DNA of 63,228 nucleotides, counting the filler, from Basidiobolus meristosporus CBS 931.73 (taxonomy: Eukaryota > Fungi > Basidiobolomycota), in assembly GCA_002104905.1 (NCBI GenBank). It is 3 parts of 3 records of this genome, joined end to end, with 100 filler letters (N's around TTAATTAATTAA, not from the genome) between each part and the next. Parts side by side here need not be neighbours in the genome. Positions count along the whole stretch, not along the records: positions 1 to 27,409 come from MCFE01000904.1; 2 more parts are not named here. One strand, written 5' to 3'. Made by a program: the position numbers and the translations under genes. Positions 1,211 through 27,409 of the stretch are shown here, in pieces. Position 1 is the stretch's first letter; each line of letters starts with the position of its first letter. The notes below the pieces were generated by a model. It was given only the letters and a program-made list of their open reading frames with translations, was not told the origin of the DNA and searched no databases.

Positions 1211-1249
1211 TGCTGGTGCTGAGCATTCTTCAAGTAATCAACATTCACA

Positions 1250-1670
1250 ATGTACAAACAACTTACCGCAGCTTGTGCTCTACTAATGGCCGTCAGTGCC
1301 TTTGGAAGTCCCGTGGATGTGTCAAGCACAAATCTCCGATAGGGATCCACAAAGCGGCCAAGTGGTGAAGAAGTTCTCGTCCAACAGGGAAGAGGATGCG
1401 CAGAATATTCGACACTACATCGATGGCATTCTCGGCCAGATGTCAAGGAATACGTTCGATCAGACACTCTCGGATAAGCAAGGAGTCGAGGAAGAGGAGG
1501 GCAATCCTGAAGAGGCCGAGCTATGGGGGAGATCCGGCGGATATGGGCGGCGAAGGGGCAGATACTGGGGACGAGGACGTTACGGTCGTTACGGTGGTTA
1601 TGGAGGTCGGTGGGGATATGGACGCTACGGGGGATATGGAGGGTATGGTGGATGCGACTGGGGTTGCTGA
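1250..1670 (+). pseudogene. Family A secreted GYRW-rich prepropeptide, frameshifted copy (A1)
   Basis: ATG at 1250 (MYKQLTAACALLMAVSAFG). A 17-nt deletion (gtagcgagcgcatccat, present in the 9191 copy) shifts the frame to TAG at 1340-1342. The rest of the gene is near-intact in the ORF-track frame 1296-1670, with a core variant WGRSGG. Confidence 0.9.
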
Positions 1671-3151: not shown

Positions 3152-3421
3152 ATGTATATGAGTTGTGGCAGCAACGGAAGGGGATACGGTGATAGGATAC
3201 ATTGGTACATGGAGATGGCGAATGCCGACCAAGGAGTCGAGGAAGAGGAGGGCAATCCTGAAGAGGCCCAGCTATGGGGGAGATACGGCGGGTATGGGCG
3301 GTGGAGGGGCAGATACTGGGGACGAGGACGTTACGGTCGCTACGGTGGTTATGGAGGTCGGTGGGGATATGGACGCTACGGGAGATATGGAGGGTATGGT
3401 GGATGCGACTGGGGTTGCTGA
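3152..3421 (+). CDS. Leaderless chimeric family A ORF (89 aa); expression uncertain
   Basis: The 3' part (ADQGVEEEEG...CDWGC) is an A gene. The 5' part (up to ~3219) matches non-coding DNA upstream of B genes (cf. 5116-5175). No signal peptide. The core is intact. Confidence 0.45.
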   Translation: MYMSCGSNGRGYGDRIHWYMEMANADQGVEEEEGNPEEAQLWGRYGGYGRWRGRYWGRGRYGRYGGYGGRWGYGRYGRYGGYGGCDWGC

Positions 3422-3760: not shown

Positions 3761-4175
3761 TGTGTGTGTTTTACCGTCAAATCGAATATTAAATACGATT
3801 GTATAGAGCTATAAGGGGATAAGCCCGGTTGGCAAGGAGAGACAGGCAGTGAAGGGGAATATTCTATTAGAGTACTTTTTTCAGTCTTGGGAGTGCGCAT
3901 ATGATGCTAATCCATCATTCTTACTTCAGTTTCTAGCCAAGAGAGCCCATTTCTTGCTACTAGTAACATAAAAAGACTTGAATCACTACAATTTTATCGT
4001 GTGTATGACTTGATATAGTGTGTGTGGCTTGGGTTTCTATACGTAAACAAATGACATAGTTGCTACAAGTGCAAAAGCTGATTAAATGCATGCATATATT
4101 CGTAGAGTGAAATAACTCATTGGAATCTCTATAGTCTTACCGTTAGGCATATGACTGATAGTGGTGGTGAAAGAT

Positions 4176-4219
4176 GATGCCCAGTTGATGCCCCGTTGAT
4201 GCCCCGTTGATGCCCCGTT
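4176..4219. repeat. 11-bp VNTR (GATGCCCCGTT) x4
   Basis: Four tandem units between GAAAGAT and GATGCGTAG. Confidence 0.95.
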
Positions 4220-5441
4220 GATGCGTAGATAAGCCTTTCATACGAGGATTCTGATTCAAAACACGGATTTTTGAGATTTTTCAGCTTTGTGGAGTGTATC
4301 TTTTGAGCGTTTGTTCAATAACCATGATGGCTATGGTAGATAAATACACTCATGTTAGAGTATCTACCGCATCAAGCTACTAGTCAAGTTATTACTTACA
4401 CTCTGATCACTGACTGACACTTAGACCATCATATCTGTGGTGTATAGAAGACCATAAGGTTCATTGTAGTCATTCTCAGCAGAAATACTCTGACCTCAGC
4501 ACTCACTGCTATGAACAGTTCTTCCTTCACTAAAGTCTCAATAGACTGTGATATTGACATGCTGGTATAGGTGATGCATGCTTTGTACAGTTCTCCATGG
4601 TTAAGTGCGGTAGGCCTCTACTTTCTTCATTTTAGACCCCACCAGAACCTTGGCTCGCTTCTAAATCAGTGTCGTACTAGTAGCATTCAGGTGCCATATC
4701 AATTATCGTATATTCTCCACAATATCCCGATATTTGAAGAGCTCATTTGAGATATTCACAAATAAGAATGAAAATGTGATCCTTGAGGCAATAAATGGTT
4801 GTCATTTAGTAACAATGACAGTACTTGAACCGCAACCCCTTCCAATATCAGCTAGCATGAACTTACAACAAGCTGTATGCACTGAGAATATATTAGATAA
4901 GTACACTAATTATTATATTGTCGCAGCCTAACTTGGAGCTTACTGAACCACCGTTAAGCTGAGCTATACACCAAATAAGTATATACTTCAGGATGTACTG
5001 CGGCAGGTTGACTGTATGCATAACCGACTATGATTAAATAATGGAGTTGGCTCAAGAGATGTCATCAACCATGCCGTTCTTTAGTAAATAGGACGATGTA
5101 AGGGGAGTTATGACATCAAAGGAAGGGGATAACGACGCTACAGTGACAGGATATATTGGTACATGGAGATGGCTGCAACTGGAGGTACAGACTCGTCAAC
5201 ACTCGGTTCACACAATCAATATCAACATATCTGCTAAACAAATGATCTTTTTAAGCTTTGAGTTGTGTTATGCGTGTTTGATTGAATGAAGAGCCACTAA
5301 ACAGCTTCTATTGAACGACCATATGGATCACCCGCAGCGCTTCCCACTGAAGGCAGAGGTGAAGTTGAGTGTCTTTAATCAGCTTCTGCTGTGCGGGTAT
5401 ATATATTCATAATCGGCTCGAGTGCTTCATTCAGATTCACA

Positions 5442-5861
5442 ATGTACAAACACTTCTCCATCACCTTTGCTCTCCTAATTGCCTCATGTGCAGTGGCAAT
5501 TCCTGTGCAGCCAGAAGTAACCAATGTAGCAAGTGCTTCCATCTCCATCCGGGACCCACAAAGCGGAAAAATGATAACACAATTCCAATCCACAAAAGAC
5601 GAAGATGCTCGTGCCCTTCTTGACGACATATTCGGTCAAATTTCAGGCGGTGGGTTGGCAAATGAACAAGTATCTCCTACAAGTGAAGACAATGACTCTG
5701 AAGAGGCCGAGCTTTGGGGCAGATATGGTGGCTATGGAAGGTGGGGGAGCAGATACTGGGGACGGGGACGTTACGGTCGCTATGGTGGCTACGGAGGCCG
5801 ATGGGGATATGGGCGCTACGGGGGATATGGTGGCTATGGTGGATGCGACTGGGGTTGCTAA
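5442..5861 (+). CDS. Family B secreted GYRW-rich prepropeptide (B1), 139 aa
   Basis: ATG in the conserved ATTCACAATG context. Hydrophobic signal MYKHFSITFALLIASCAVA, acidic linker, core LWGRYGGYGRWGSRYW...GGCDWGC. TATATA upstream and AATAAA downstream. Confidence 0.9.
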   Translation: MYKHFSITFALLIASCAVAIPVQPEVTNVASASISIRDPQSGKMITQFQSTKDEDARALLDDIFGQISGGGLANEQVSPTSEDNDSEEAELWGRYGGYGRWGSRYWGRGRYGRYGGYGGRWGYGRYGGYGGYGGCDWGC

Positions 5862-6060
5862 TACACTACATCCTTACGTTAAATAAACATCATAATGTCA
5901 ATGCTTCAATCTAAACCTCATCGCAATTAATAGAAGCCGCTCAGTGATGCTTACCAAGCTGCGGTAGGGAGAGAAAGTCAGATATGTGTATAGATAAGGT
6001 GGATGTCTAGGCAAAGATAAGTCTTATTGCAGTTTGGCAGTCGATTATCTTCCTAAATGG

Positions 6061-6130
6061 TGCCAATCTTTACCTTCAAATGCTGACAATTTTTATCTTC
6101 AATGCTGTCAATCTTTACTTTTCAATGGTG
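6061..6130. repeat. Three imperfect ~23-bp direct repeats in the B-A intergenic region
   Basis: Unit ~CAATYTTTAYCTTYAATGC repeated three times. Also present at ~14016-14085. Confidence 0.7.
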
Positions 6131-6491
6131 TGCTGTTAGTAAAGTGATTTTTTTCGCTTCATATTTGCCTAATCTTCCATGAATGCCGTCTATAGCTTTC
6201 TTATATTCATGTGGTGCTGTCGACCTGGACTGTACGAACCATTTTACTTTACGTTCTGCTTTCTAGAGTATCTAATGGTCTGACTACTACTAATATGACG
6301 ATTAATTAGTATATACTCATGGTGACACTATTCTAGAGGCTCTTATTGTATCTTCCTAATGCCTGTAGAATAGATGCAAAATATAATATATCGTTCGTCC
6401 GAAACCCATCAATTTCGCGAAGCTTCCTAGATGTGATGTCTATAAACCTCCATCTTGGCCAAAAGCTGTATTGAAGTATTCAACATTCACA

Positions 6492-6941
6492 ATGTACAAA
6501 CAACTTACCGCAGCCTGTGCTCTACTAATGGTCGTCAGTGCCTTTGGAGCTCCCGTGGATGTGTCAAACACAAATGTAGCGAGCGCATCCATCTCTGATA
6601 GGGACCCACAAAGCGGCCAAGTGGTGAAGAAGTTCTCGTCCAACAGGGAGGAGGATGCGCAGAATATTCGACACTACATCGATGGCATTCTCGGCCAGAT
6701 GTCAAGGAATACGTTTGATCAGACTCTCTCGAGCAAGCAAGGCGCCGATCAAGGAGTTGAGGAAGAGGAGGGCAATCCAGAAGAGGCCGAGCTATGGGGT
6801 AGATACGGCGGATATGGGCGTCGGAGGGGCAGATACTGGGGACGAGGACGTTACGGTCGCTACGGTGGTTATGGAGGTCGGTGGGGGTATGGACGCTACG
6901 GGGGATATGGAGGGTATGGTGGATGCGACTGGGGTTGCTGA
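6492..6941 (+). CDS. Family A secreted GYRW-rich prepropeptide (A3), 149 aa
   Basis: Intact ORF from the ATG at 6492 (the ORF track extends it to an upstream TTG). Signal peptide, pro-domain, EEEEG linker and CDWGC core are all present. Confidence 0.9.
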   Translation: MYKQLTAACALLMVVSAFGAPVDVSNTNVASASISDRDPQSGQVVKKFSSNREEDAQNIRHYIDGILGQMSRNTFDQTLSSKQGADQGVEEEEGNPEEAELWGRYGGYGRRRGRYWGRGRYGRYGGYGGRWGYGRYGGYGGYGGCDWGC

Positions 6942-7070
6942 GTAAACTCCTTAATAACAAGAATCAAGGCTTTCATTCACTCCAACAACACCACTTGTCT
7001 GTGTGCTTGAATAAAGTACCGTTGCATTGTATCTATCGATAGTGAATGGCCATGTGATTATGACTCTTAT

Positions 7071-7351
7071 TTAGAGTGATAGCTGGCAGAGACCCTCACT
7101 GCTCCAAAGGTCACTTCTTTTCCGTTCTTCGCGATGTGTGTCTCGGGTTGTTTGGAGGTAATCGTAGCAATCCTGTTCCTTTTCCTGTTGCAATCTTGCA
7201 GAGAAGGGTACGGGATCGCTTTGGCGGAGGTGCTGGGCGGTCCGGAAGTGATGCTTGCGGTATCTACCGGTCACGTGTTGGCATGAGCCGAGGCTGGTAT
7301 GCAGGTTAGCAGTGCCACGGTTAAGGAGCAGAGAACGGTTTTGTATCGCAT
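7071..7351 (-). pseudogene. Family C pseudogene (C-psi3) with restored frame and one internal TGA
   Basis: Reads MRYKTVLCSLTVALLTCIPASAHANT*PVDTASITSG...GAVRVSASYHSK. An 8-nt deletion puts the exon-2 sequence back in frame behind a single TGA. Confidence 0.75.
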
Positions 7352-7686
7352 TGTGTGTGTTTCACCGTTGAATCGAATACTGAAGAGGACTGTATAGAGC
7401 TATAAGGAGATAAGCACGGTTGGCAAGGAGAGACAGGCAGAGCTACCATAACAATGAAGGGGAGCATCACCCTTACTTCAGTTTCTAGCTAAGAGAGCCC
7501 GTTCCTTGCTACTAGTATCGCCACGGTGGATACACTCCATTCATCTTTTGCTCAGAATGATGTGTAGGCATATTCTAGGCTTTCGTTCACTAGTCTGTTA
7601 CAGTTGCTCTTTCATTCTGGCTGTGTATATCTAATGGGATGCATTCTTTATCACTCCTGGCTAAACAATGCGGTTTATTGAGGATG

Positions 7687-8097
7687 CTAGCTGACAGATA
7701 CTCTTACTGCTCCAACAGTCACTTCTTTTCCGTTCTTCGCGATAGGCACCTCGAGTTGTTTGGATGTTATAGCAGCTATCCTGTTCCTGCGATTGTAACA
7801 ATCTTGCAGAGAAGGATACAGGACGGCTTGAGCAGAGGTACTGGGAGATTCAGGGGTGATGCTGGAGTAGGTCACACGTTGGCATGAGCCAGCCGAGAAT
7901 GGTAGTTGTTGTGCAGTATCTTCAGGAGTATTCACCAACTCTACATTGTAAGTATTTGGTTAGTAAGGCTCACTGGTTGCGGCTAGTTGGGTTATATACT
8001 GATACATACTTAGTAACGCACTAGAGGATTGTGCTGAAGTTGTCGTGCCGGCTAGTAGTGCCATGGTCAAGGAGCAGAAAACGGTACTGAATCGCAT
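7687..8097 (-). CDS. Family C small secreted protein, 113 aa, two exons (8097-8010 and 7940-7687), not called by the ORF track
   Basis: Exon 1 encodes MRFSTVFCSLTMALLAGTTTSAQSSSALL. The 69-nt intron (8009-7941) has GTATGT, a TACTAAC branch point (7965-7959) and TAG. Splicing joins exon 1 in frame to the 83-aa ORF 7938-7687. Confidence 0.85.
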
Positions 8098-8756
8098 TGT
8101 GTGTGCCTCTGTGTGTATGCCTGATGAATAAGGTGAACATTACAAGCGATTTTATAGGAAATTAGCCCGGCTTGTAAGGAGAGACAGGCTGAGCTACCAT
8201 GATGAAGCGGAATATTCTTTATTATTCACCAAATTCGCTTTGGGCTAAGCACTTTTTTTAAAGGAGAAACCATCGAACTCAAGTGATGATCCTTGTATTG
8301 TTCGATGACTAGTGTTAGCCTGCATATGTGGCATGGATGCGTTGCCTGCTCGCTTCCATTAGTATCGTAACGCCGAATATGGTGAGTGCGATCTAGGCGT
8401 AAATAAAGTGTTGTAGTTTCTGTTACACTGAGGCTTTAAATTTTGAGTGCATGCTTAGTATATAGGCATTGCCCATTTGTAGCCCACTCATTCATCTCCT
8501 GATGAAGGAATCAGATGGTGGTGATGACTTCTGGTGAAGAACGGCAAATGGTGGTGGTCAAAGAAAAAGATGACCAGTATGGGATTGATAACGTAAAATA
8601 TACACGAGGGGAGGCTCCGTTTATTCTTTGGTGTTCACCATGCGCAAGTACTTTTCCATCGCTCTAATACTTTTTAATGTGACAAGTGTGTCCATCTCTT
8701 CTCCAAAGTCGGGAAACGGTGTGTAGGAAGAAGGTGCTCGCACCAGAGAGGGCAGG

Positions 8757-8830
8757 TGACGAGGTCGTTATGGTCACTTCGGGGACTATGATGGTCGCTG
8801 GGAACTTGGAGGGTTTGCTTGAGCTGCTAA
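8757..8830 (+). pseudogene. Relic of an older, diverged GYRW-core paralogue
   Basis: Reads *RGRYGHFGDYDGRWELG, collinear with GRGRYGRYGGYGGRWGYG, and ends in ...CTGCTAA like the B genes. Confidence 0.55.
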
Positions 8831-9190: not shown

Positions 9191-9640
9191 ATGTACAAAC
9201 AACTTACCGCAGCTTGTGCTCTACTAGTGGCCGTCAATGCCTTTGGAAGTCCCGTGGATGTGTCAAGCACAAATGTAGCGAGCGCATCCATCTCCGATAG
9301 GGATCCACAAAGTGGCCAAGTGGTGAAGAGGTTCTCGTCCAACAAGGAGGAGGATGCGCAGAATATTCGACACTACATCGATGGCATTCTCGGCCAGATG
9401 TCAAGAAATACGTTCGATCAGACCCTCTCGGATAAGCAAGACGCCGACCAAGATGTCGAGGAAGAGGAGGGCAATCCAGAAGAGGCCCAGCTATGGGGGA
9501 GATACGGTGGATATGGGCGGCGGAGGGGCAGATACTGGGGACGAGGACACTACGGTCGCTACGGTGGTTATGGAGGTCGATGGGGATATGGACGCTACGG
9601 GGGATATGGATGGTATGGTGGATGCGACTGGGGTTGCTAA
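9191..9640 (+). CDS. Family A secreted GYRW-rich prepropeptide (A4), 149 aa
   Basis: Intact ORF with TATA box at 9144-9151. Core variants GRGH and GWY. Confidence 0.9.
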   Translation: MYKQLTAACALLVAVNAFGSPVDVSSTNVASASISDRDPQSGQVVKRFSSNKEEDAQNIRHYIDGILGQMSRNTFDQTLSDKQDADQDVEEEEGNPEEAQLWGRYGGYGRRRGRYWGRGHYGRYGGYGGRWGYGRYGGYGWYGGCDWGC

Positions 9641-9768
9641 ATAATAAGAATCAAGGCTTTCATTCCACTCCAACAACACAGACTTGTCTAGTGTGCTTGA
9701 ATAAAGTACCGTTGCATTGTATCTATCGATAGTGAATGGCCATGTGATTATGACTCTTATTGAGAATG

Positions 9769-10037
9769 CTAGTTGGCAGAGACTCTCACTGCTCCAACGG
9801 TCACTTCTTTTCCGTACTTCGCGATGTGTATCTCGAATTGTTTAGAGGTAATTGTAGCAGTCCTGTTCCTTTTACAGTTGCAATCTTGCAGGGAAGGGTA
9901 CAGGATTACTTTGGCGGAGGTGCTGGGTGGACCGGAAGTGATGCTTGTGGTATCTACCGGTTTGCAGGTCACGTGTTGACATGAGCTGATGTTGACACGC
10001 TGGTTAGCAGTGCCACGGTTAAGGAGTAGAGAACGGG
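9769..10037 (-). pseudogene. Family C pseudogene (C-psi4), 5'-truncated
   Basis: The exon-2-like frame is open (ORF 9769-9972). The start region is lost at ~10037. Confidence 0.75.
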
Positions 10038-11259: not shown

Positions 11260-11511
11260 ATGAATATGAGTTGTGGCAGCAACGGAAGGGGATACGGTGA
11301 TAGGATACATTGGTACATGGAGATGGCGAATGCCGACCAAGGAGTCGAGGAAGAGGAGGGCAATCCTGAAGAGGCCGAGCTATGGGGGAGATACGGCGGG
11401 TATGGGCCGTGGAGGGGCAGATACTGGGGACGAGGACGTTACGGTCGTTACGGTGGTTATGGAGGTCTGTGGGAATATGGAGGCTATGGTGGATGCGACT
11501 GGGGTTGCTGA
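11260..11511 (+). CDS. Leaderless chimeric family A ORF (83 aa), degenerating
   Basis: Same fusion junction as 3152-3421. The core has an in-frame deletion and R>P, R>L and G>E changes. Confidence 0.35.
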   Translation: MNMSCGSNGRGYGDRIHWYMEMANADQGVEEEEGNPEEAELWGRYGGYGPWRGRYWGRGRYGRYGGYGGLWEYGGYGGCDWGC

Positions 11512-11913: not shown

Positions 11914-12258
11914 TGTGTGTGTTTTACCGTTAAATCGAATATTAAATACGATTGTATAGAGCTATAAGGAGATAGGCACTGTTGGCAAGGAGAGACAGGC
12001 AGAATTACCATGACAATGAAGGGGAGTATTCTATTAGAGTACTTTTTTCAGTCTTGGGAGTACGCATATGATTACTTCAGTTTCTAGCCAAGAGAGCCCG
12101 TTCCTTGCTACTAGTAACATAGAAAGACTTCAAAACGTCATAGTTGCTATAAGCGCAAACCTGATTGAATGCATGCATATAATCGTAGAGTGAAATAACT
12201 CATTGAAATCTCTATAGTCTTACCGTTGGGCATATGACTGATAGTGGTGGTGAAAGAT

Positions 12259-12291
12259 GATGCCCAGTTGATGCCCCGTTGATGCCCCGTT
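12259..12291. repeat. 11-bp VNTR x3
   Basis: Same unit and flanks as 4176-4219. Confidence 0.95.
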
Positions 12292-13418
12292 GATGCGTAG
12301 ATAAGCCTTTCATACGAGGATTCTGATTCAAATACGTCTGCCTCAAACACGGATTTTGACCAGGACAAGACCTTGTGACCATCTGAGCTTTGTGGAGTGT
12401 ATCTAACCATGACGGCTATGGTAGATAAATACACTCATGCTGGAGTATCTATCACATCAGTACTATCATTACTTACACTCTGATCACTGACTGACACCTA
12501 CACCATCATATCTTTGGTGTATAGAAGATCATAAGGTTTGTCGTAGTCATTTTCACAGAACCATTATCTCCTCAGTATTCTCAGCAGAAATACTCTGACC
12601 TCAGCACTCACTGCTATGAGCAGTTCTTCCTTCACTAAATATCAAGTACCCTATATTCTCCACAATATCAAGTACCCTATATTCTCCACAATATCCCAAT
12701 ATTTGAAGATATTTGCAACAGATACTGTACAACTAAGAATGAAAATGGAATGCTTGAGGCTATCAATGGTTGTCATTTAGTAATAATGATCGCAGCTAGT
12801 TCTCAGTGCTTGAACCGCAGCCCCTTCCAATATCAGCTAGCATGAACTTACAACAAGCTATATGCACTGAGAATCTATTCGATAAGTACACTAATTTTTA
12901 TATTATCGCAGCCTAACTTGGAGCTTACTAATTCCGCTTACCATACACCGACCAAGTATATTCTTCAGGATTTACTGCGGTAGGTTAACTGTATGTGTAA
13001 CCGACTGGGAAGAAATACTGGAGTTATCTCAAGAGATGTCATTAATCATGCCATTCTTTAGTAAATATGATGATATAAAGGGAGTTATGGCATCAACGGA
13101 AGGGGATAACGACGCTACAGTGACAGGATACATTGGTACATGGAGATGGCTGCAACTGGAAGTTCACACAATCAATATCAACATATGGCTAACCTGCAAC
13201 ATATCTGCTAAACAAATGATCTTGTGAAGCTTTTCGTTGTGTTATGCGTGTTTGATTGAATGAAGAGCCACTAAACAGTTTCTATTGAACGATCGTATGG
13301 ATCACCCGCAGCGCTTCTCACTGAAGGCAGAGGTAAAGTTGAGTGTCTTTAATAAGCTCCATCATCAGCTTCTGCTATGCGGGTATATATACTCATAATC
13401 AGCTCATTCAGATTCACA

Positions 13419-13838
13419 ATGTACAAGCACCTCTCCATCCCCTTTGCTCTCCTAATTGCCTCATATGCAGTGGCAACTCCTGTGCAGCCAGAAGCAACCA
13501 ATGTAGCAAGTGCTTCCATCTCCATCCGGGACCCACAAAGCGGCAAAATGATAACACAATTCCAATCCGCAAAAGACGAAGATGCTCGCGCCATTCTTGA
13601 CGACATATTCGGCCAAATGTCAGGCGGTGGGTTGGCAGATGAAGAAGTGTCTCCTACAAGTGAAGACACTGACTCTGAAGAGGCCGAGCTTTGGGGTAGA
13701 TATGGTGGCTATGGAAGGTGGGGGAGCAGATACTGGGGACGAGGACGTTACAGTCGCTATGGTGGCTACGGAGGCCGATGGGGATATGGGCGTTACGGGG
13801 GATATGGTGGCTATGGTGGATGCGACTGGGGTTGCTAA
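13419..13838 (+). CDS. Family B secreted GYRW-rich prepropeptide (B2), 139 aa
   Basis: Intact ORF from the ATG at 13419. Close paralogue of B1. Confidence 0.9.
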   Translation: MYKHLSIPFALLIASYAVATPVQPEATNVASASISIRDPQSGKMITQFQSAKDEDARAILDDIFGQMSGGGLADEEVSPTSEDTDSEEAELWGRYGGYGRWGSRYWGRGRYSRYGGYGGRWGYGRYGGYGGYGGCDWGC

Positions 13839-14302: not shown

Positions 14303-14752
14303 ATGTACAAACAACTTACCGCAGCTTGTGCTCTACTAATGGTCGTCAGTGCCTTTGGAAGTCCCGTAGATGTGTCAAGCACAAATGTAGCGAGCGCATC
14401 CATCTCCGATAAGAACCCGCAAAGCGGTCAAATGGTGAAGAAGTTCTCGTCCAACAAGGAAGAGGATGCGCAGAATATTCGACACTACATCGATGGCATT
14501 CTCGGCCAGATGTCGAGGAATACGTTTGATCAGACTATCTCGAGCAAGCAAGGCGCCGACCAAGGAGTCGAGGAAGAGGAGGGCAATCCTGAAGAGGCCC
14601 AGCTATGGGGGAGATACGGTGGATATGGGCGGCGAAGGGGCAGATACTGGGGACGAGGAGGTTACGGTCGCTACGGTGGTTATGGAGGTCGGTGGGGATA
14701 TGGACGCTACGGGGGATATGGAGGGTATGGTGGATGCGACTGGGGTTGCTGA
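14303..14752 (+). CDS. Family A secreted GYRW-rich prepropeptide (A6), 149 aa
   Basis: Intact ORF from the ATG at 14303, with TATA box at 14256-14263. Confidence 0.9.
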   Translation: MYKQLTAACALLMVVSAFGSPVDVSSTNVASASISDKNPQSGQMVKKFSSNKEEDAQNIRHYIDGILGQMSRNTFDQTISSKQGADQGVEEEEGNPEEAQLWGRYGGYGRRRGRYWGRGGYGRYGGYGGRWGYGRYGGYGGYGGCDWGC

Positions 14753-14880
14753 ATAATAACAAGGATCAAGGCTTTCATTCACTCCAACAACACAGCTTGT
14801 CTGTGTGCTTGAATAAAGTATCGTTGCATTTTATCTATCGATAGTGAATGGCCATGTGATTATGACTCCTATTGAGAATG

Positions 14881-15138
14881 CTAGTTAGCAGAGACTCTCA
14901 CTGCTCCAACGGTCACTTCTTTTCCGTAGTTTCGAGGTAATCGCAGCAAACCTGAACCTTTTCCTGTTGCAATCTTGCAGAGAAAGGTACAGGATTGCTT
15001 TGGCGGAGGTGCCGGGTGGTCCGGAAGTTATGCCTACGGTGTCCAATGGCCCGGCAGTCACGTGTTGCCATGAGCCAAGGTTGATACGCAGGTTGGCAGT
15101 ACCATGTTTAAGGAGGAGAGAACGGTATTGAGTCGTAT
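14881..15138 (-). pseudogene. Family C pseudogene (C-psi6)
   Basis: Homology to family C. The start codon is lost (ATA). Confidence 0.7.
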
Positions 15139-15409
15139 TGTGAGTACTTCACCGTTGAATCGAATATTAAAGAAGATTGTGTAGAGCCATAAGGGGATAT
15201 GCAGAGTTACTAAGATAATGAAGGGGAATAATATACAACTTTATCGTGTGTATGACTTGTTATAGTGTGTGTGGCTTGGGTTTCGATACGTAAACAAATG
15301 GCATAGTTGCTTTGATTGAATGCATGCATATAATCGTAGAGTGAAATAACTCATTGAAATCTCTATAGTCTTACCGTTGGGCATATAACTGATAGTGGTG
15401 GTGAAAGAT

Positions 15410-15616
15410 GATGCCCCGTTGATGCCCCGTTGATGCCCCGTTGATGCCCCGTTGATGCCCCGTTGATGCCCCGTTGATGCCCGTTGATGCCCCGTTGATG
15501 CCCCGTTGATGCCCCGTTGATGCCCCGTTGATGCCCCGTTGATGCCCGTTGATGCCCCGTTGATGCCCCGTTGATGCCCCGTTGATGCCCCGTTGATGCC
15601 CCGTTGATGCCCCGTT
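15410..15616. repeat. 11-bp VNTR, ~19 units
   Basis: 17 units of 11 bp plus 2 of 10 bp. Confidence 0.95.
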
Positions 15617-16842
15617 GATGCGTAGATAAGCCTTTCATACGAGGATTCTGATTCAAAATCGTCTGCCTCAAAACACGGATTTTGACCAGGACAAGATCTT
15701 GTGACCATCTGAGCTTTGTGGAGTGTATCTAACCATGACGGCTATGGTAGATAAATACACTCATGATGAAGTATCTATCACATCAAGCTACTAGTCAAGT
15801 TATTACTTACACTCTGATCACTGACTGACACTTACACCATCATATCTCTGGTGTATAGAAGACCATAAGGTTCATTGTAGTCATTCTCAGCAGAAATACT
15901 CACTTACTGCTATTCCCAACTCTTCCTTCACAGGTATGGCTGAAGTCTCAATATACTGAGAGATTGGCAGGCTTTGTACAGTACTCCAGCAGTCTTTCGG
16001 AGATGCTTTCACTATTCAGCTCACTACAGCACACTAAGCCTAAACATGACATCAGCCAAGCAACAAGCATTATTTCTTGGTACTCATAGTAAATTCCAAC
16101 ACATGACTTGCTTTGTATTCCCACTTCAGGTAGCTATAGGATATACATAAGACTCTGCTTCATACAGTATGTTGGTGCTATGTTGACTATTGCTAAGTGA
16201 ATATATGCTCTACTGGTAAAATATAAAGTCGGTAAACTTATTCCTGTCCGCACAATAGATACCTTTGTAGCCTAAAGCATGTTGGTGGACTTTGTGGTAT
16301 ATGTTTTCTACAATGTCCTAATATTTGAACACGCTTGCTACAACTCATTGGAGATATTCACAAATGAGACTATACAACTAAAAATGATCACTTAATAAAT
16401 GGACGTTGTTTGATAAGAATCCTTCAATACTTGAACCAGCTTATACGAATATCAAACGAACTATATGCACTACAAGGGAATATATTATACAAGTACAGAA
16501 GTACAATAATCGTTATATTTCGTATACCACCGTTCAGCTGAGCTATACACTGACTCCATATATACTTCAGGGCGTGCTGTGGCATGAGTAACCGGCTAGG
16601 AATAAATACTGGAGTTAGATGTAACTAGATAGGTTTATCAAGCTCCATCATCATTCCATTCCTGAAGACACCGACTCTGATGGCAGCAACGGAAGGAGAT
16701 TAGGACGCTACGTTTCTGGGGCACATTGGGACATGGAGATGGCTGCAACTGGAGTCAAAATATGGTCCACACAATCAATAGCGGTATCCTCAATATGTGG
16801 CTAATATGTACAATCCGCTCAACTCCTTCATTCAGATTCAAA

Positions 16843-17020
16843 ATGCACTAGCACTTCTTCATCACCATTACTCTCTTAATCGCTTCGTGTGCAGTGGCGA
16901 TTCCTGTGCAGCCAGAAGTGACCAATATAGCAAGTGCTTCCATCTCCATCCGGGACCCACAAAGCGGCAAAATGATATCACAATTTCAATCCACAAAAGA
17001 CGAGGATACTCGCGCCATTC
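16843..17020 (+). pseudogene. Family B pseudogene, 5' fragment (B3)
   Basis: ATG CAC TAG (stop at codon 3). Homology to B ends at the duplication junction. Confidence 0.85.
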
Positions 17021-17294
17021 TATTGTGAGTACTTCACCGTTGAATCGAATATTAAAGAAGATTGTGTAGAGCCATAAGGGGATATGCAGAGTTACTAAGA
17101 TAATGAAGGGGAATAATATACAACTTTATCGTGTGTATGACTTGTTATAGTGTGTGTGGCTTGGGTTTCGATACGTAAACAAATGGCATAGTTGCTTTGA
17201 TTGAATGCATGCATATAATCGTAGAGTGAAATAACTCATTGAAATCTCTATAGTCTTACCGTTGGGCATATAACTGATAGTGGTGGTGAAAGAT

Positions 17295-17491
17295 GATGCC
17301 GTGATGCCCGTTGATGCCCGTTGATGCCCGTTGATGCCCCGTTGATGCCCCGTTGATTTGATGCCCCGTTGATGCCCCGTTGATGCCCCGTTGATGCCCC
17401 GTTGATGCCCCGTTGATGCCCCGTTGATGCCCCGTTGATGCCCCGTTGATGCCCCGTTGATGCCCCGTTGATGCCCCGTTGATGCCCCGTT
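17295..17491. repeat. 11-bp VNTR, ~18 irregular units
   Basis: Duplicated VNTR with several short or broken units. Confidence 0.9.
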
Positions 17492-18717
17492 GATGCGTAG
17501 ATAAGCCTTTCATACGAGGATTCTGATTCAAAATCGTCTGCCTCAAAACACGGATTTTGACCAGGACAAGATCTTGTGACCATCTGAGCTTTGTGGAGTG
17601 TATCTAACCATGACGGCTATGGTAGATAAATACACTCATGATGAAGTATCTATCACATCAAGCTACTAGTCAAGTTATTACTTACACTCTGATCACTGAC
17701 TGACACTTACACCATCATATCTCTGGTGTATAGAAGACCATAAGGTTCATTGTAGTCATTCTCAGCAGAAATACTCACTTACTGCTATTCCCAACTCTTC
17801 CTTCACAGGTATGGCTGAAGTCTCAATATACTGAGAGATTGGCAGGCTTTGTACAGTACTCCAGCAGTCTTTCGGAGATGCTTTCACTATTCAGCTCACT
17901 ACAGCACACTAAGCCTAAACATGACATCAGCCAAGCAACAAGCATTATTTCTTGGTACTCATAGTAAATTCCAACACATGACTTGCTTTGTATTCCCACT
18001 TCAGGTAGCTATAGGATATACATAAGACTCTGCTTCATACAGTATGTTGGTGCTATGTTGACTATTGCTAAGTGAATATATGCTCTACTGGTAAAATATA
18101 AAGTCGGTAAACTTATTCCTGTCCGCACAATAGATACCTTTGTAGCCTAAAGCATGTTGGTGGACTTTGTGGTATATGTTTTCTACAATGTCCTAATATT
18201 TGAACACGCTTGCTACAACTCATTGGAGATATTCACAAATGAGACTATACAACTAAAAATGATCACTTAATAAATGGACGTTGTTTGATAAGAATCCTTC
18301 AATACTTGAACCAGCTTATACGAATATCAAACGAACTATATGCACTACAAGGGAATATATTATACAAGTACAGAAGTACAATAATCGTTATATTTCGTAT
18401 ACCACCGTTCAGCTGAGCTATACACTGACTCCATATATACTTCAGGGCGTGCTGTGGCATGAGTAACCGGCTAGGAATAAATACTGGAGTTAGATGTAAC
18501 TAGATAGGTTTATCAAGCTCCATCATCATTCCATTCCTGAAGACACCGACTCTGATGGCAGCAACGGAAGGAGATTAGGACGCTACGTTTCTGGGGCACA
18601 TTGGGACATGGAGATGGCTGCAACTGGAGTCAAAATATGGTCCACACAATCAATAGCGGTATCCTCAATATGTGGCTAATATGTACAATCCGCTCAACTC
18701 CTTCATTCAGATTCAAA

Positions 18718-19058
18718 ATGCACTAGCACTTCTTCATCACCATTACTCTCTTAATCGCTTCGTGTGCAGTGGCGATTCCTGTGCAGCCAGAAGTGACCAA
18801 TATAGCAAGTGCTTCCATCTCCATCCGGGACCCACAAAGCGGCAAAATGATATCACAATTTCAATCCACAAAAGACGAGGATACTCGCGCCATTCTTGAC
18901 GACATATTCGGCCAAATGTCAGGCGGTGGGTTGACAAATGAACAAGTGAAGACACTGACTCTGAAGAGGCCGAGCTTTGGGGTAGATATGGTGGCTATGG
19001 AATACAGGGGAGTAGATACTGGGGACGAGGACGTTACGGTCGTTATGGTGCTTACGGA
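18718..19058 (+). pseudogene. Family B pseudogene (B4)
   Basis: Stop at codon 3, a 13-nt deletion between AAGTG direct repeats, and a core truncated before CDWGC. Confidence 0.85.
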
Positions 19059-19297
19059 TTCAATTGAAGTGTTTCTTTTTCGCAGCATTTTTACCAGCCG
19101 CGTTAGTGGAAACACACATACTTACTTCATCAGTATGCTTGTCCCTATCTTACTAACAACAGTATACTAGAGCTAGCACAAAGCTTCCTAATGCTTGTAA
19201 CATAGATTCGACTGGAACCCATCAATTCTGCGAAGTGTCCTAGATGCAATGTCTATTAACCTGGTTTAGTATATAAATCGAGTGTTCAACATTCACA

Positions 19298-19663
19298 ATG
19301 TACAAACAACTTACCGCAGCTTGTGCTCTACTAATGGTCGCCAGTGCCTTTGGAAGTCCCGTGGATGCGTCAAGCACAAATCTCCGATAGAAACCCACAA
19401 AGCGGCCTAGTGGTGAAGAAGTTCTCGTCCAACAGGGAAGAGGAAGCGCAGAATACTCGACACTACATCGATGTTATTCTCAGCCAGATGTCAAGGAATA
19501 CGCTCGATCAGACTCTCTGGAGCAATCAAGGAGTCGAGGAAGAGCAGGGTAATCCAGAAGAGGCCCAGCTAGGGGGGAGATACGGCGGAGGAGCAGATAC
19601 TGGGGACGAGAAGGTTATGGAGGGCGTTGGGGATATGGGCGTTACGGGGGATACGGAGGATGC
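19298..19663 (+). pseudogene. Family A pseudogene (A7)
   Basis: Carries the same 17-nt and 12-nt deletions as A1, plus several core deletions. Confidence 0.85.
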
Positions 19664-21689
19664 AATATACTCCATTCAACTTCATCATGAATATTCTTGA
19701 CAATAAAACCGATGAGTACGCATATTCGAGGCTTGCATTCCCTCTTATAAAACAACTGGCCTATGCCCATGAATAGATTTTTGCTACTTGGAGTGCAATC
19801 TAACGCAATAGTGTGCGTGGCTTGGGCCTCTAAACGTAATTTAATGCCGTAGTGATTCTTTCTTCTTATCTGAATGAATGCATGCAGAGGTATATGAGTA
19901 AAGAGTAACAATGAGCTGGAACGAATTGTTCTTTCTACTTTTGACAAAATCACACGCCAACTCTTATAGCCGTATGAAGCAACCTTCAATTAGGCACTTT
20001 ATCTGTTTTCTTATGCTACTCTATATAGATTACTATGGATAGCATATATATAAACTTTATTCTTTGGTATTGCACATCCACAATGTGGTCATATGGGCAA
20101 GGAGCTTTTATCCTTCATATTTATATATGTTATTCTTATTGTATATATTATTGTTACCATCCTTGGAGTGTATCTATGCATGGTTGATCGATAGTTTTGA
20201 TGGTCAGAGTATACAAGTATTGTAGTTGTGCATAATGCCTCATTTTTTTTGCTCCATCGTATTAATCTGTTACTATTGTGCTAGCCGTCAACTTGCTGAT
20301 ACTTTTAGCCATCAATCAGCAACTCCTGTTCAAATCAGTCATGTCTACTGATGCATTGGGGCTCCAGATTATATTAAAAAAATTTGCCCCTTTAAAGACT
20401 TAGGTACCATGAAATCATCTAGTTCCGCTTTCAAAACTTTGCATAGGTAGTGTGCTACAGAAATATAGATTAATGCTTCTTTTAAAGCAGCAAAGGTATT
20501 GATTAGTCCTCCCCAAAGTCTCTGTGTAGATGTTGTAAAGACCAGAGTATTTTTGCTCTTCCTCTATGGCCAGTGAAGGCAGTATAAGTGCTGCTTGTGT
20601 TACATGACTTCCAACTTGCTTGTACCTGTTGATTTTGCTTGTTTTTAAGCCTCCTATATACTTGTGCTATTTTGCAACCCTCTGAGTTGTCAGAGTTGAT
20701 AAATGTTCACTAAAACACATGAGTGAGTACTTCTTCCACCATGAGCAATCTGAAACTTGCAACTCTTCTGATAATGTGTTGGTATTTGACTTTTATTCCA
20801 AGGGTATTTAACTGGCACTCAACTGGTGCTTTCCTTCTTATTTCTATTCAGAGATATTCATGAAAGTTTTGTGCAACTGATTGGCAAATTGATGTGTCTG
20901 TTGTTTGGTCTAGCCTCCTGTTAGTGTCTATTTGACTGGTCTGCTCAATAGCTAGGGCCAGAGATATTGATATTTATTAGCTCCATTAAGCACTGAGCTC
21001 AGTAAACATTACAATGGTATTTTGCTCATCTTTAACTACTTTTCTACTCAGCACAAGTTAGCTACTAGTGAAAGCTTAAAGAACTAAATACAAAAGGACA
21101 AAGGGACTCTATGCTAGCTGACTGTTAAACACAGGGTTACCAAGCCTGTGTGTAGAGACAACAATGATTCCCATTCAGCTTCTAAGCTGTGAATCTGGCA
21201 TATACAGACTGTCTATAAATCAATGTAATTATAACTATGAAGCGTACATAAGTCACTCTAAGTAGGTGGAAATATACATGTTGTCACAGTTCTCAGCTAA
21301 TAGGTTGCACACCAACTTAATCAGTGTATGCAAGGCAGCCACAGTGTAATTGTAGCAAGGCATTTCTTAGTAAAGTCCTGCAAGGTGATGCTATTTCTGG
21401 TAATCACTAGTACTAGATCAGCTGTTGTTGTATCCCTAGACCTGCACAAGTCCCCAACATCAGTTTCCTTGATTATGCAATCTGCTTGTCCTTTAGAAAT
21501 GCCCAAAATGCATTACACTAATCTGAAGCAGTGCTACACTGCAATGCTATGAATGAGTAGGTGATGTATATCTGTTCTGCCTTACTATTGCTGCAATGGA
21601 TGCTACTATGATGCACCCTTGTAAATTTAACCTCATTGAAATCTCAAAGTTGGAATAAATCTGATTTTCTGCTAGTACTCAGTTGGTAT

Positions 21690-27210: not shown

Positions 27211-27409
27211 TTAGGGTTAGGGTTAGGGTTAGGGTTAGGGTTAGGGTTAGGGTTAGGGTTAGGGTTAGGGTTAGGGTTAGGGTTAGGGTTAGGGTTAGGT
27301 TAGGGTTAGGGTTAGGGTTAGGGTTAGGGTTAGGGTTAGGGTTAGGGTTAGGGTTAGGGTTAGGGTTAGGGTTAGGGTTAGGGTTAGGGTTAGGGTTAGG
27401 GTTAGGGTT
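27211..27409 (+). repeat. Telomeric repeat (TTAGGG)~33 at the contig end
   Basis: 199 bp of TTAGGG, G-rich strand facing the end, with one TTAGG variant near 27295. Followed directly by the N spacer. Confidence 0.97.

Follow-up and report, generated by a model that had tools for sequence, protein, structure and literature searches.

The most constrained module of the genes analyzed here is the low-complexity basic core with which their products end. Among 20 intact copies, the dN/dS ratio is about 0.05-0.12 in the core, 0.3-0.55 in the pro-region and 0.6-1 in the signal peptide, and thus the purifying selection on the core, which the preliminary description had proposed from one pair of genes, is borne out in a larger set. 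As judged from the sequences, the genes form a genus-restricted, subtelomeric, birth-and-death set that encodes putative secreted precursors.

The window, i.e. the whole stretch of DNA, comprises 63,228 nucleotides, and its positions 1 to 27,409 are the whole of MCFE01000904.1, a contig of Basidiobolus meristosporus CBS 931.73, a member of Zoopagomycota that is associated with the gut of amphibians and reptiles. This contig carries a tandem array of two gene types, A and B, in which tblastn locates 12 family copies, all on the plus strand, of which five are intact and about seven are broken or fragmentary. The features are the following:

1241..1667, plus strand: A-type copy, broken; frameshift near 1317-1336, tblastn match in two frames
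3215..3418, plus strand: A-type 3' fragment with the linker end and the core, 5' part missing
5442..5861, plus strand: intact B-type gene B1, 139 aa (ORF, translation)
about 5442-5498, plus strand: putative signal peptide of B1
about 5499-5711, plus strand: pro-region of B1
5712-5858, plus strand: core of B1
5859-5861, plus strand: stop codon of B1
6492..6941, plus strand: intact A-type gene A3, 149 aa (ORF, translation)
about 6492-6551, plus strand: putative signal peptide of A3
about 6552-6791, plus strand: pro-region of A3
6792-6938, plus strand: core of A3
6939-6941, plus strand: stop codon of A3
8634..8816, plus strand: weak, decayed family remnant (tblastn E = 1e-4; stop codons in the translation)
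9191..9640, plus strand: intact A-type gene, 149 aa (ORF, alignment)
11323..11508, plus strand: A-type 3' fragment, core with an 18-nt deletion
13419..13838, plus strand: intact B-type gene, 139 aa, segmental-duplicate partner of B1
14303..14752, plus strand: intact A-type gene, 149 aa, segmental-duplicate partner of A3
16834..17022, plus strand: B-type copy reduced to a 5' fragment, on the edge of a 1,885-bp tandem duplication
18709..19058, plus strand: B-type copy, frameshifted, core truncated
19289..19660, plus strand: A-type copy, degenerate; frameshifts, 13- and 18-nt core deletions
27211..27409, plus strand: telomere repeat (TTAGGG), about 33 units, reaching the contig end

The run of TTAGGG units closes the contig, and the array is therefore subtelomeric. 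It is made up of a unit of about 8 kb that is duplicated with about 86% identity, together with the 1,885-bp tandem duplication, whose copies are 99.4% identical. The region between 20 and 27 kb is AT-rich and devoid of a convincing ORF, and scans of the 27,409-bp contig against Rfam and for tRNAs returned no matches. The annotated models of the CBS 931.73 genome match the contig ORFs at 100% identity; one of them, P0016, corresponds to positions 19365-19697 and overlaps the degenerate A-type copy at 19289..19660. In the broken copy at 1241..1667 the core remains in frame (ORF 1296-1670), with one Tyr-to-Ser change. Six further contigs of the same assembly contain similar B-A arrays, as well as P0014, a lone divergent paralogue that is 36% identical to A3. 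Dozens of family members are kept near a chromosome end in B. meristosporus. The comparison set drawn from these seven contigs comprises 20 intact genes and 15 broken copies, the frameshifts of which could be assembly errors.

An intact gene is a single exon for a precursor of 139-149 residues, in which a putative signal peptide is followed by a pro-region that is acidic (net charge about -9) and 70-80 residues long, by a PEEAELWGR junction and by the basic core of 49 residues. By a heuristic reading of the sequence, the signal peptide has Lys as its third residue, a run of 13-14 hydrophobic residues, and then small residues followed by Pro. The AlphaFold2 model, which was built on an alignment of 15 rows and is of low confidence (mean pLDDT 47), places one helix at residues 3-17, within the putative signal peptide, and another at residues 53-80, and leaves the core as coil. 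The pro-region contains several conserved blocks (VASxS, a basic strand-like stretch, and EDA followed by a predicted helix) and ends with an acidic stretch that closes in PEEAE/Q-LWGR. This junction is invariant in the A-type and B-type genes, in P0014 and in arrays of a further type, termed RW, while the sequence around it is barely alignable; its conservation suggests that the precursor is cleaved there. The alignment contains no dibasic site directly before the core.

The core comprises 21 Gly (43%), 10 Tyr (20%), 8-10 Arg (16-20%) and 4-5 Trp (8-10%), and ends with a C-x3-C motif; it has a mass of 5.6 kDa, a net charge of +7 to +9 and a pI of about 10 (for A3: 5.6 kDa, +9 and 10.2, respectively). 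Four YGGYG motifs per core can be read from the alignment. Within core residues 15-45, every third position is occupied exclusively by Tyr, Arg or Cys, and a second phase consists almost wholly of Gly. The charges of the pro-region and the core are -9 and +9 in A3, -10 and +7 in B1, -12 and +7 in P0014, and -15 and +13 in a representative of the fourth subfamily.

Comparison of the B1 core with the A3 core (5712-5858 vs 6792-6938) reproduces exactly the codon count given in the preliminary description: of the 49 codons, the two genes share 29, and 17 show synonymous and three non-synonymous differences. The latter are at codons 11-13, which encode W-G-S in B1 and R-R-G in A3, and altogether 21 of the 147 nucleotides differ. 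The synonymous share of the changed codons (17 of 20) compares with a neutral expectation of 25-28% (binomial p ~2e-7), and the NG86 estimates are dS = 0.76 and dN = 0.037, i.e. a ratio of 0.05. The signal and linker regions had been described as far more diverged, and this is indeed the case, with dN at 0.50 for the signal peptide and 0.43 for the pro-region, vs 0.037 for the core.

The same pattern extends over the intact copies compared. Between the A and B types, the NG86 dN is 0.47 in the signal peptide, 0.43 in the pro-region (where the method is saturated) and 0.039 in the core; the core dS is 0.70, which gives a ratio of about 0.05, and within the types the core ratio is 0.10 for A and 0.08 for B. 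Some of the compared contigs may be haplotigs rather than paralogous arrays, those concerned being MCFE01001049, 0610, 0866, 0688 and 0283, and counts made by parsimony on the tree allow for such shared ancestry: synonymous vs non-synonymous changes stand at 14:34 for the signal peptide, 54:80 for the pro-region and 39:12 for the core, which implies dN/dS of 0.7-0.95, 0.4-0.6 and 0.10-0.12, respectively, for kappa of 1-5, and the core differs from the pro-region with p = 1.4e-5 in Fisher's test. Maximum likelihood (ML) codon models, with IQ-TREE among the tools used for the selection analysis, are incompatible with dN/dS = 1 in the core (p = 6e-6) and in the pro-region (p = 2e-7), and compatible with it in the signal peptide. 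Their point estimate for the core varies with the model chosen, being 0.11-0.14 under MG, 0.24 under GY with F1X4 or F3X4, and 0.44 under GY with empirical codon frequencies. We regard the last value as an artefact, because with an alphabet of only four residues the constraint is taken up into the codon frequencies; the MG models, NG86 (0.05-0.10) and parsimony (~0.10-0.12) are mutually consistent. A sliding window across the intact copies, which had been suggested as the check on this constraint, yields pN/pS of 0.02-0.05 over residues 116-145 and a single variable patch at residues 110-113. In the comparison with the deep paralogue P0014, for which synonymous sites are saturated, dN is 0.17 in the core and 0.63 in the pro-region. 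Between segmental duplicates the coding sequences are 93-95% identical and free of indels, whereas the 400-bp flanks show 69-91% identity and 3-25 gaps.

The broken copies present a different picture. Their core substitutions are distributed over the three codon positions as 45:34:65, compared to 18:4:43 in the intact copies (p = 0.007), and their cores contain indels in 10 of 15 cases, many of which are not multiples of three, compared to two of 20 intact copies, both with in-frame deletions, of 3 and 6 residues (p = 0.0009). With this loss of codon-position bias and gain of indels, the broken copies provide an internal neutral control of pseudogenes. The expectation that a Gly-rich tract would normally drift in length and order is thus confirmed, since both do drift once a copy is inactivated. 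The related proposal that the exact spacing of residues matters is slightly overstated, given the few in-frame length variants of the core.

Two explanations would dispense with selection on the peptide. The least probable of all those that we considered is that the ORFs are unexpressed and represent chance open frames in a stop-poor subtelomeric repeat. It is true that the +1 frame and the antisense frame are likewise open across the core, and that the +1 frame is the one used for the core in several public models (P0002, P0006-P0013). However, the start codon, the signal peptide and the stop codon are all conserved, the ML ratios for the pro-region and the core are significantly below 1, intact cores almost never contain indels, and substitutions gather at the third positions of frame 0. 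In the +1 frame and in the antisense ORF alike, these fall on second positions, and therefore neither alternative is conserved as a protein; on these grounds we rejected the +1-frame ORF (e.g. 6655-6945) and the antisense ORF (6535-6960) as real genes. The models P0002 and P0006-P0013 derive from frameshifted copies, and many public gene models of the core family are hereby flagged as frame-shifted artefacts. It is also very improbable that the similarity of the cores results from gene conversion between A and B, concerted evolution or mutational bias, although tandem arrays are a setting in which conversion is common and NG86 yields a pS of 0.45 for the core as against 0.77 for the pro-region. 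The high value in the pro-region reflects in part saturation and alignment noise, and at four-fold sites under conserved residues the A/B divergence is similar in the core (0.42) and upstream (0.48). Besides, the core contains 11 fixed A/B differences (seven at third and four at first positions), no polymorphic site is shared between the types, copies cluster across contigs by their place within the repeat unit and not by contig, and in the broken copies the changes are even over codon positions and indels are present. The equal four-fold divergence, the fixed differences and the grouping by place within the repeat unit lead us to conclude that conversion does not explain the pattern in the core, in agreement with the original argument that the many synonymous differences speak against it. 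Separately, a conserved element located 3' of the A-type genes was considered as a structured RNA and rejected, with no Rfam match and no support from covariation.

All homologues found in databases are hypothetical proteins of Basidiobolus. Apart from a few low-complexity matches, a word search and a profile search of 1.84 billion representatives returned no relatives from outside the genus. The Pfam scan of the B1 and A3 proteins gave nothing at E <= 1, and the PDB sequence search gave only noise from Gly-rich regions of DnaJ. In the ESM Atlas, the whole protein has one weak lead (0.83), an oomycete "glycine-rich protein", and the core alone has no usable match; the metagenome scan with the family profile yielded 212 pattern matches, none of which was confirmed. 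The literature search found no paper that mentions these loci or ties Basidiobolus to the core family. Within B. meristosporus, the RW sister subfamily forms tandem arrays of its own, with five copies in L008 and three in L009. Its members have the same leader and PEEAELWGR junction as the A and B types, followed by (WGRGR)n that ends with RRW, a core of 34-39 residues with Gly spacers, no Tyr and a net charge of +13 to +15; the L008 type additionally has a His/Lys-rich stretch. The number of repeats differs between the copies, and pN is 0.09 in the RW core, where pS is saturated, vs 0.34 upstream, a signature of constraint like that of the A and B types. Three homologues from Basidiobolus ranarum (115-119 aa) comprise the signal peptide and the pro-region and stop right past the acidic tail, without a core, and no Gly/Tyr/Arg/Trp-rich frame is present on the two B. 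ranarum contigs examined. As far as these sequences tell, the core was either gained in the B. meristosporus lineage or lost in B. ranarum; given the coreless homologues, the pro-region could itself be functional.

As to the function of the core, we favour a role as an antimicrobial-type cationic peptide, a reading by analogy to which we give about an even chance of being right. It is favoured because the precursor is balanced in charge, the core contains YGGYG motifs, the sister core is of the Arg/Trp kind and the habitat is dense in microbes, B. meristosporus being exposed to dense gut bacteria in amphibians and reptiles. The precursor would enter the secretory pathway, with the acidic pro-piece neutralising the basic core until cleavage at or close to the conserved junction; the 5.6-kDa peptide released in this way, with a small C-terminal disulfide loop, would act outside the cell on competing microbes of the gut or dung. 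Arg residues could bind anionic envelopes and Trp and Tyr could serve as anchors at the membrane interface, possibly in a register-dependent conformation, e.g. similar to polyproline-II or polyglycine-II, which would explain why positions and not merely composition are conserved. In many families of antimicrobial peptides, however, the mature peptide diversifies while the leader is conserved; a conserved core behind a variable leader is the reverse, and this counts against the antimicrobial reading, as do the lack of a dibasic site before the core, the coreless B. ranarum homologues and the fact that near-identical multicopy genes are also suited to a bulk structural or adhesive product. A broader proposal, which we make tentatively and consider possible rather than probable, is that these genes represent an undescribed superfamily of subtelomeric ribosomal peptides of Basidiobolus, in which one leader with PEEAELWGR is combined with interchangeable cationic cores, either Gly/Tyr/Arg (with the period-3 Tyr/Arg stripe and the C-x3-C clasp) or (WGRGR)n, and selection acts on the register of residues and thereby on a defined conformation.

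Several known systems offer partial parallels. The precursors of nematode NLP and caenacin peptides are short and are cleaved at basic sites. These peptides (NLP-29/31 type and CNC) are secreted, basic, rich in Gly and aromatic residues, contain YGGYG/YGGWG and are encoded by clustered multigene families (PMC6780910), and the core resembles them in being small, basic and Gly/aromatic-rich, with YGGYG repeated. It shares no sequence homology with them, and differs in that the mature part is the most conserved one and is accompanied by the long acidic pro-region, the invariant PEEAELWGR and the terminal C-x3-C. Glycine-rich cationic antimicrobial peptides include also the shepherins of plants and the acanthoscurrin and ctenidins of spiders, and we know of none from early-diverging fungi. 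Like Pg-AMP1 of plants (PMC5902452), the core is small, Gly-rich and cationic, a likeness of composition only. Pg-AMP1, shepherins, acanthoscurrin and ctenidins belong to unrelated lineages and have no alignable similarity to it. The Arg/Trp repeat of the sister core, in turn, recalls indolicidin, tritrpticin, lactoferricin fragments and synthetic (RW)n, from which it differs by Gly spacers, greater length, fungal origin and the position behind the acidic leader of the Gly/Tyr type. Repeats of Arg and Trp are a classic antimicrobial composition, the subject of a review (PMC6017362). The charges of the pro-region and the core nearly cancel each other, which by analogy is reminiscent of the precursors of defensins and cathelicidins, although the folds are unrelated. 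In those precursors an anionic pro-piece offsets the cationic peptide.

The main rival to the antimicrobial reading, which we consider rather unlikely, takes the core for an extracellular peptide with a structural, adhesive or coacervating role that is produced as bulk material, for instance in the adhesive tip of capilliconidia, in the wall matrix of spores or zygospores, or in a layer cross-linked via Tyr. The action of such a peptide would depend on cation-pi and aromatic contacts, possibly with oxidation of Tyr as in mussel foot protein 3 (Mfp-3), a protein of about 6 kDa that is cationic, rich in Tyr-derived Dopa, contains Trp and has many sequence variants (PMC12721214). The core is of similar size and charge and has the same palette of Gly, Tyr, Arg and Trp (PMC12721214), it is predicted to be disordered, the many near-identical copies under purifying selection fit a demand for dosage, and the acidic pro-piece could block early self-association. 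However, the core is not homologous to Mfp-3, is fungal rather than molluscan, and has the C-terminal Cys pair and the acidic pro-region; Pfam, word and profile searches detected no homology to adhesive proteins, genes for tyrosinase or peroxidase are absent from the 27,409-bp contig, and the RW sister core is devoid of Tyr. The layout of leader, junction and core, the invariance of the junction and the conserved Cys pair would also suit a pheromone-like or RiPP-like precursor of a peptide with a signalling role or with post-translational modifications, with the leader and junction as recognition elements for enzymes. We find this improbable, as the 27,409-bp contig is devoid of genes for modifying enzymes, those neighbours of P0014 that match Pfam are unrelated and of housekeeping type (one neighbour of 548 aa has no Pfam match), Kex2-flanked repeats are absent, a core of 49 residues with a net charge of +9 is atypical among pheromones, and dozens of copies are unusual in a signal. 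Two particular candidates were rejected. A fungal RiPP cluster (ustiloxin/dikaritin, with DUF3328/UstYa, tyrosinase and methyltransferase) is at odds with the contig ORFs of at least 110 aa, which are family copies, their antisense shadows and low-complexity sequences; and a Kex2-processed repeat protein (KEP) is at odds with the single core per precursor and the junction free of a dibasic KR/RR site (RRR occurs inside A-type cores and is absent from B-type ones). A survey of KEPs found B. meristosporus to be rich in them and does not describe the core family.

Gly-rich low-complexity tracts are usually deemed evolutionarily loose, and here two such cores are the parts of the gene that are kept most tightly. 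With pseudogene copies in the same arrays available for neutral comparison, the order-dependence of a disordered cationic peptide becomes testable. If adhesive, the core would represent a counterpart of mussel Mfp-3 among fungi; if antimicrobial, it would provide, to our knowledge, the first Gly/aromatic-rich ribosomal peptides of host-defence type from an early-diverging fungus; and if the tentative grouping of both kinds of core into one superfamily is true, Basidiobolus would possess fungal peptides, antimicrobial or adhesive, that form a new class.

The first part of the window (MCFE01000904.1 of B. meristosporus) closes with about 33 copies of TTAGGG (27211-27409) that reach the end of the contig and form a telomere, and the whole array of secreted-precursor genes is therefore subtelomeric, its last copy lying about 7.5 kb from the repeat. 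Telomere repeats were found in none of the other fetched loci.

Features of the array and of related loci (positions in the window unless a locus is named)
15409-15621 and 17302-17496: 11-bp minisatellite TGATGCCCCGT, about 19 copies
4175-4224 and 12258-12296: short versions of the same minisatellite
1790-2060, 7060-7330, 7625-7895, 9760-10030 and 14870-15140, also in loci L003-L006: conserved element of about 250 nt
L003 7491-7931 and L005 4106-4537: A-type copies with core deletions
L008 4924-10246 (B. meristosporus contig MCFE01000402): sister-subfamily tandem array
L009 681-3666 (B. meristosporus contig MCFE01001163): sister-subfamily tandem array
L007 3185-3532 and L010 5001-5360 (GCA_040143965.1): B. 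ranarum homologues

The minisatellite lies within a tandem duplication of 1,885 bp (15136-17021 versus 17021-18896, 99.4% identical) and accounts for the repetitive antisense open reading frames at 15241-15708 and 17248-17583. The conserved element is found about 140 nt 3' of every A-type gene, twice downstream of the A-type gene A3, and several public gene models extend into it. It had no match in Rfam and no covariation support, and could be a 3' UTR or a piece of the duplicated unit.

Many annotated family proteins (P0002, P0006-P0013, K493DRAFT_*) have the core read in the +1 frame, which yields acidic 'GADTGDEDVTVATVV...'-type tails (for example at 6655-6945), or are spliced into sequence further downstream. 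These models appear to be artefacts of annotating frameshifted copies; the composition of the core allows them, since it keeps the other frames open. Within the cores (5712-5858, 6792-6938 and others) the codon usage for Gly, Arg and Tyr is mixed, with GGA at 40%, GGT at 32%, GGG at 18% and GGC at 10% of Gly codons, and TAC about as frequent as TAT; upstream of the core GGC (63%) and TAC (82%) prevail. The DNA of the core is therefore less repetitive than the peptide, and this may reduce replication slippage.

The sister subfamily has the leader and the PEEAELWGR junction in common with the Gly/Tyr/Arg family, followed by a (WGRGR)n core with a C-terminal RRW or RW; the L008 type has an additional His/Lys-rich stretch of the KKHHKK type that is variable in length. 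Here too the core is the most conserved part. The B. ranarum proteins P0020, P0031 and P0032 comprise only the signal peptide and the pro-region and end after the acidic tail, and a Gly/Tyr/Arg/Trp-rich frame is absent downstream of the homologues on the two B. ranarum contigs examined (L007/P0020 and L010/P0032). In two otherwise intact A-type copies of the Gly/Tyr/Arg family, those in L003 and L005, the core has lost 3 and 6 residues by in-frame deletion, and these natural length variants are possible test cases for the importance of spacing in the core.
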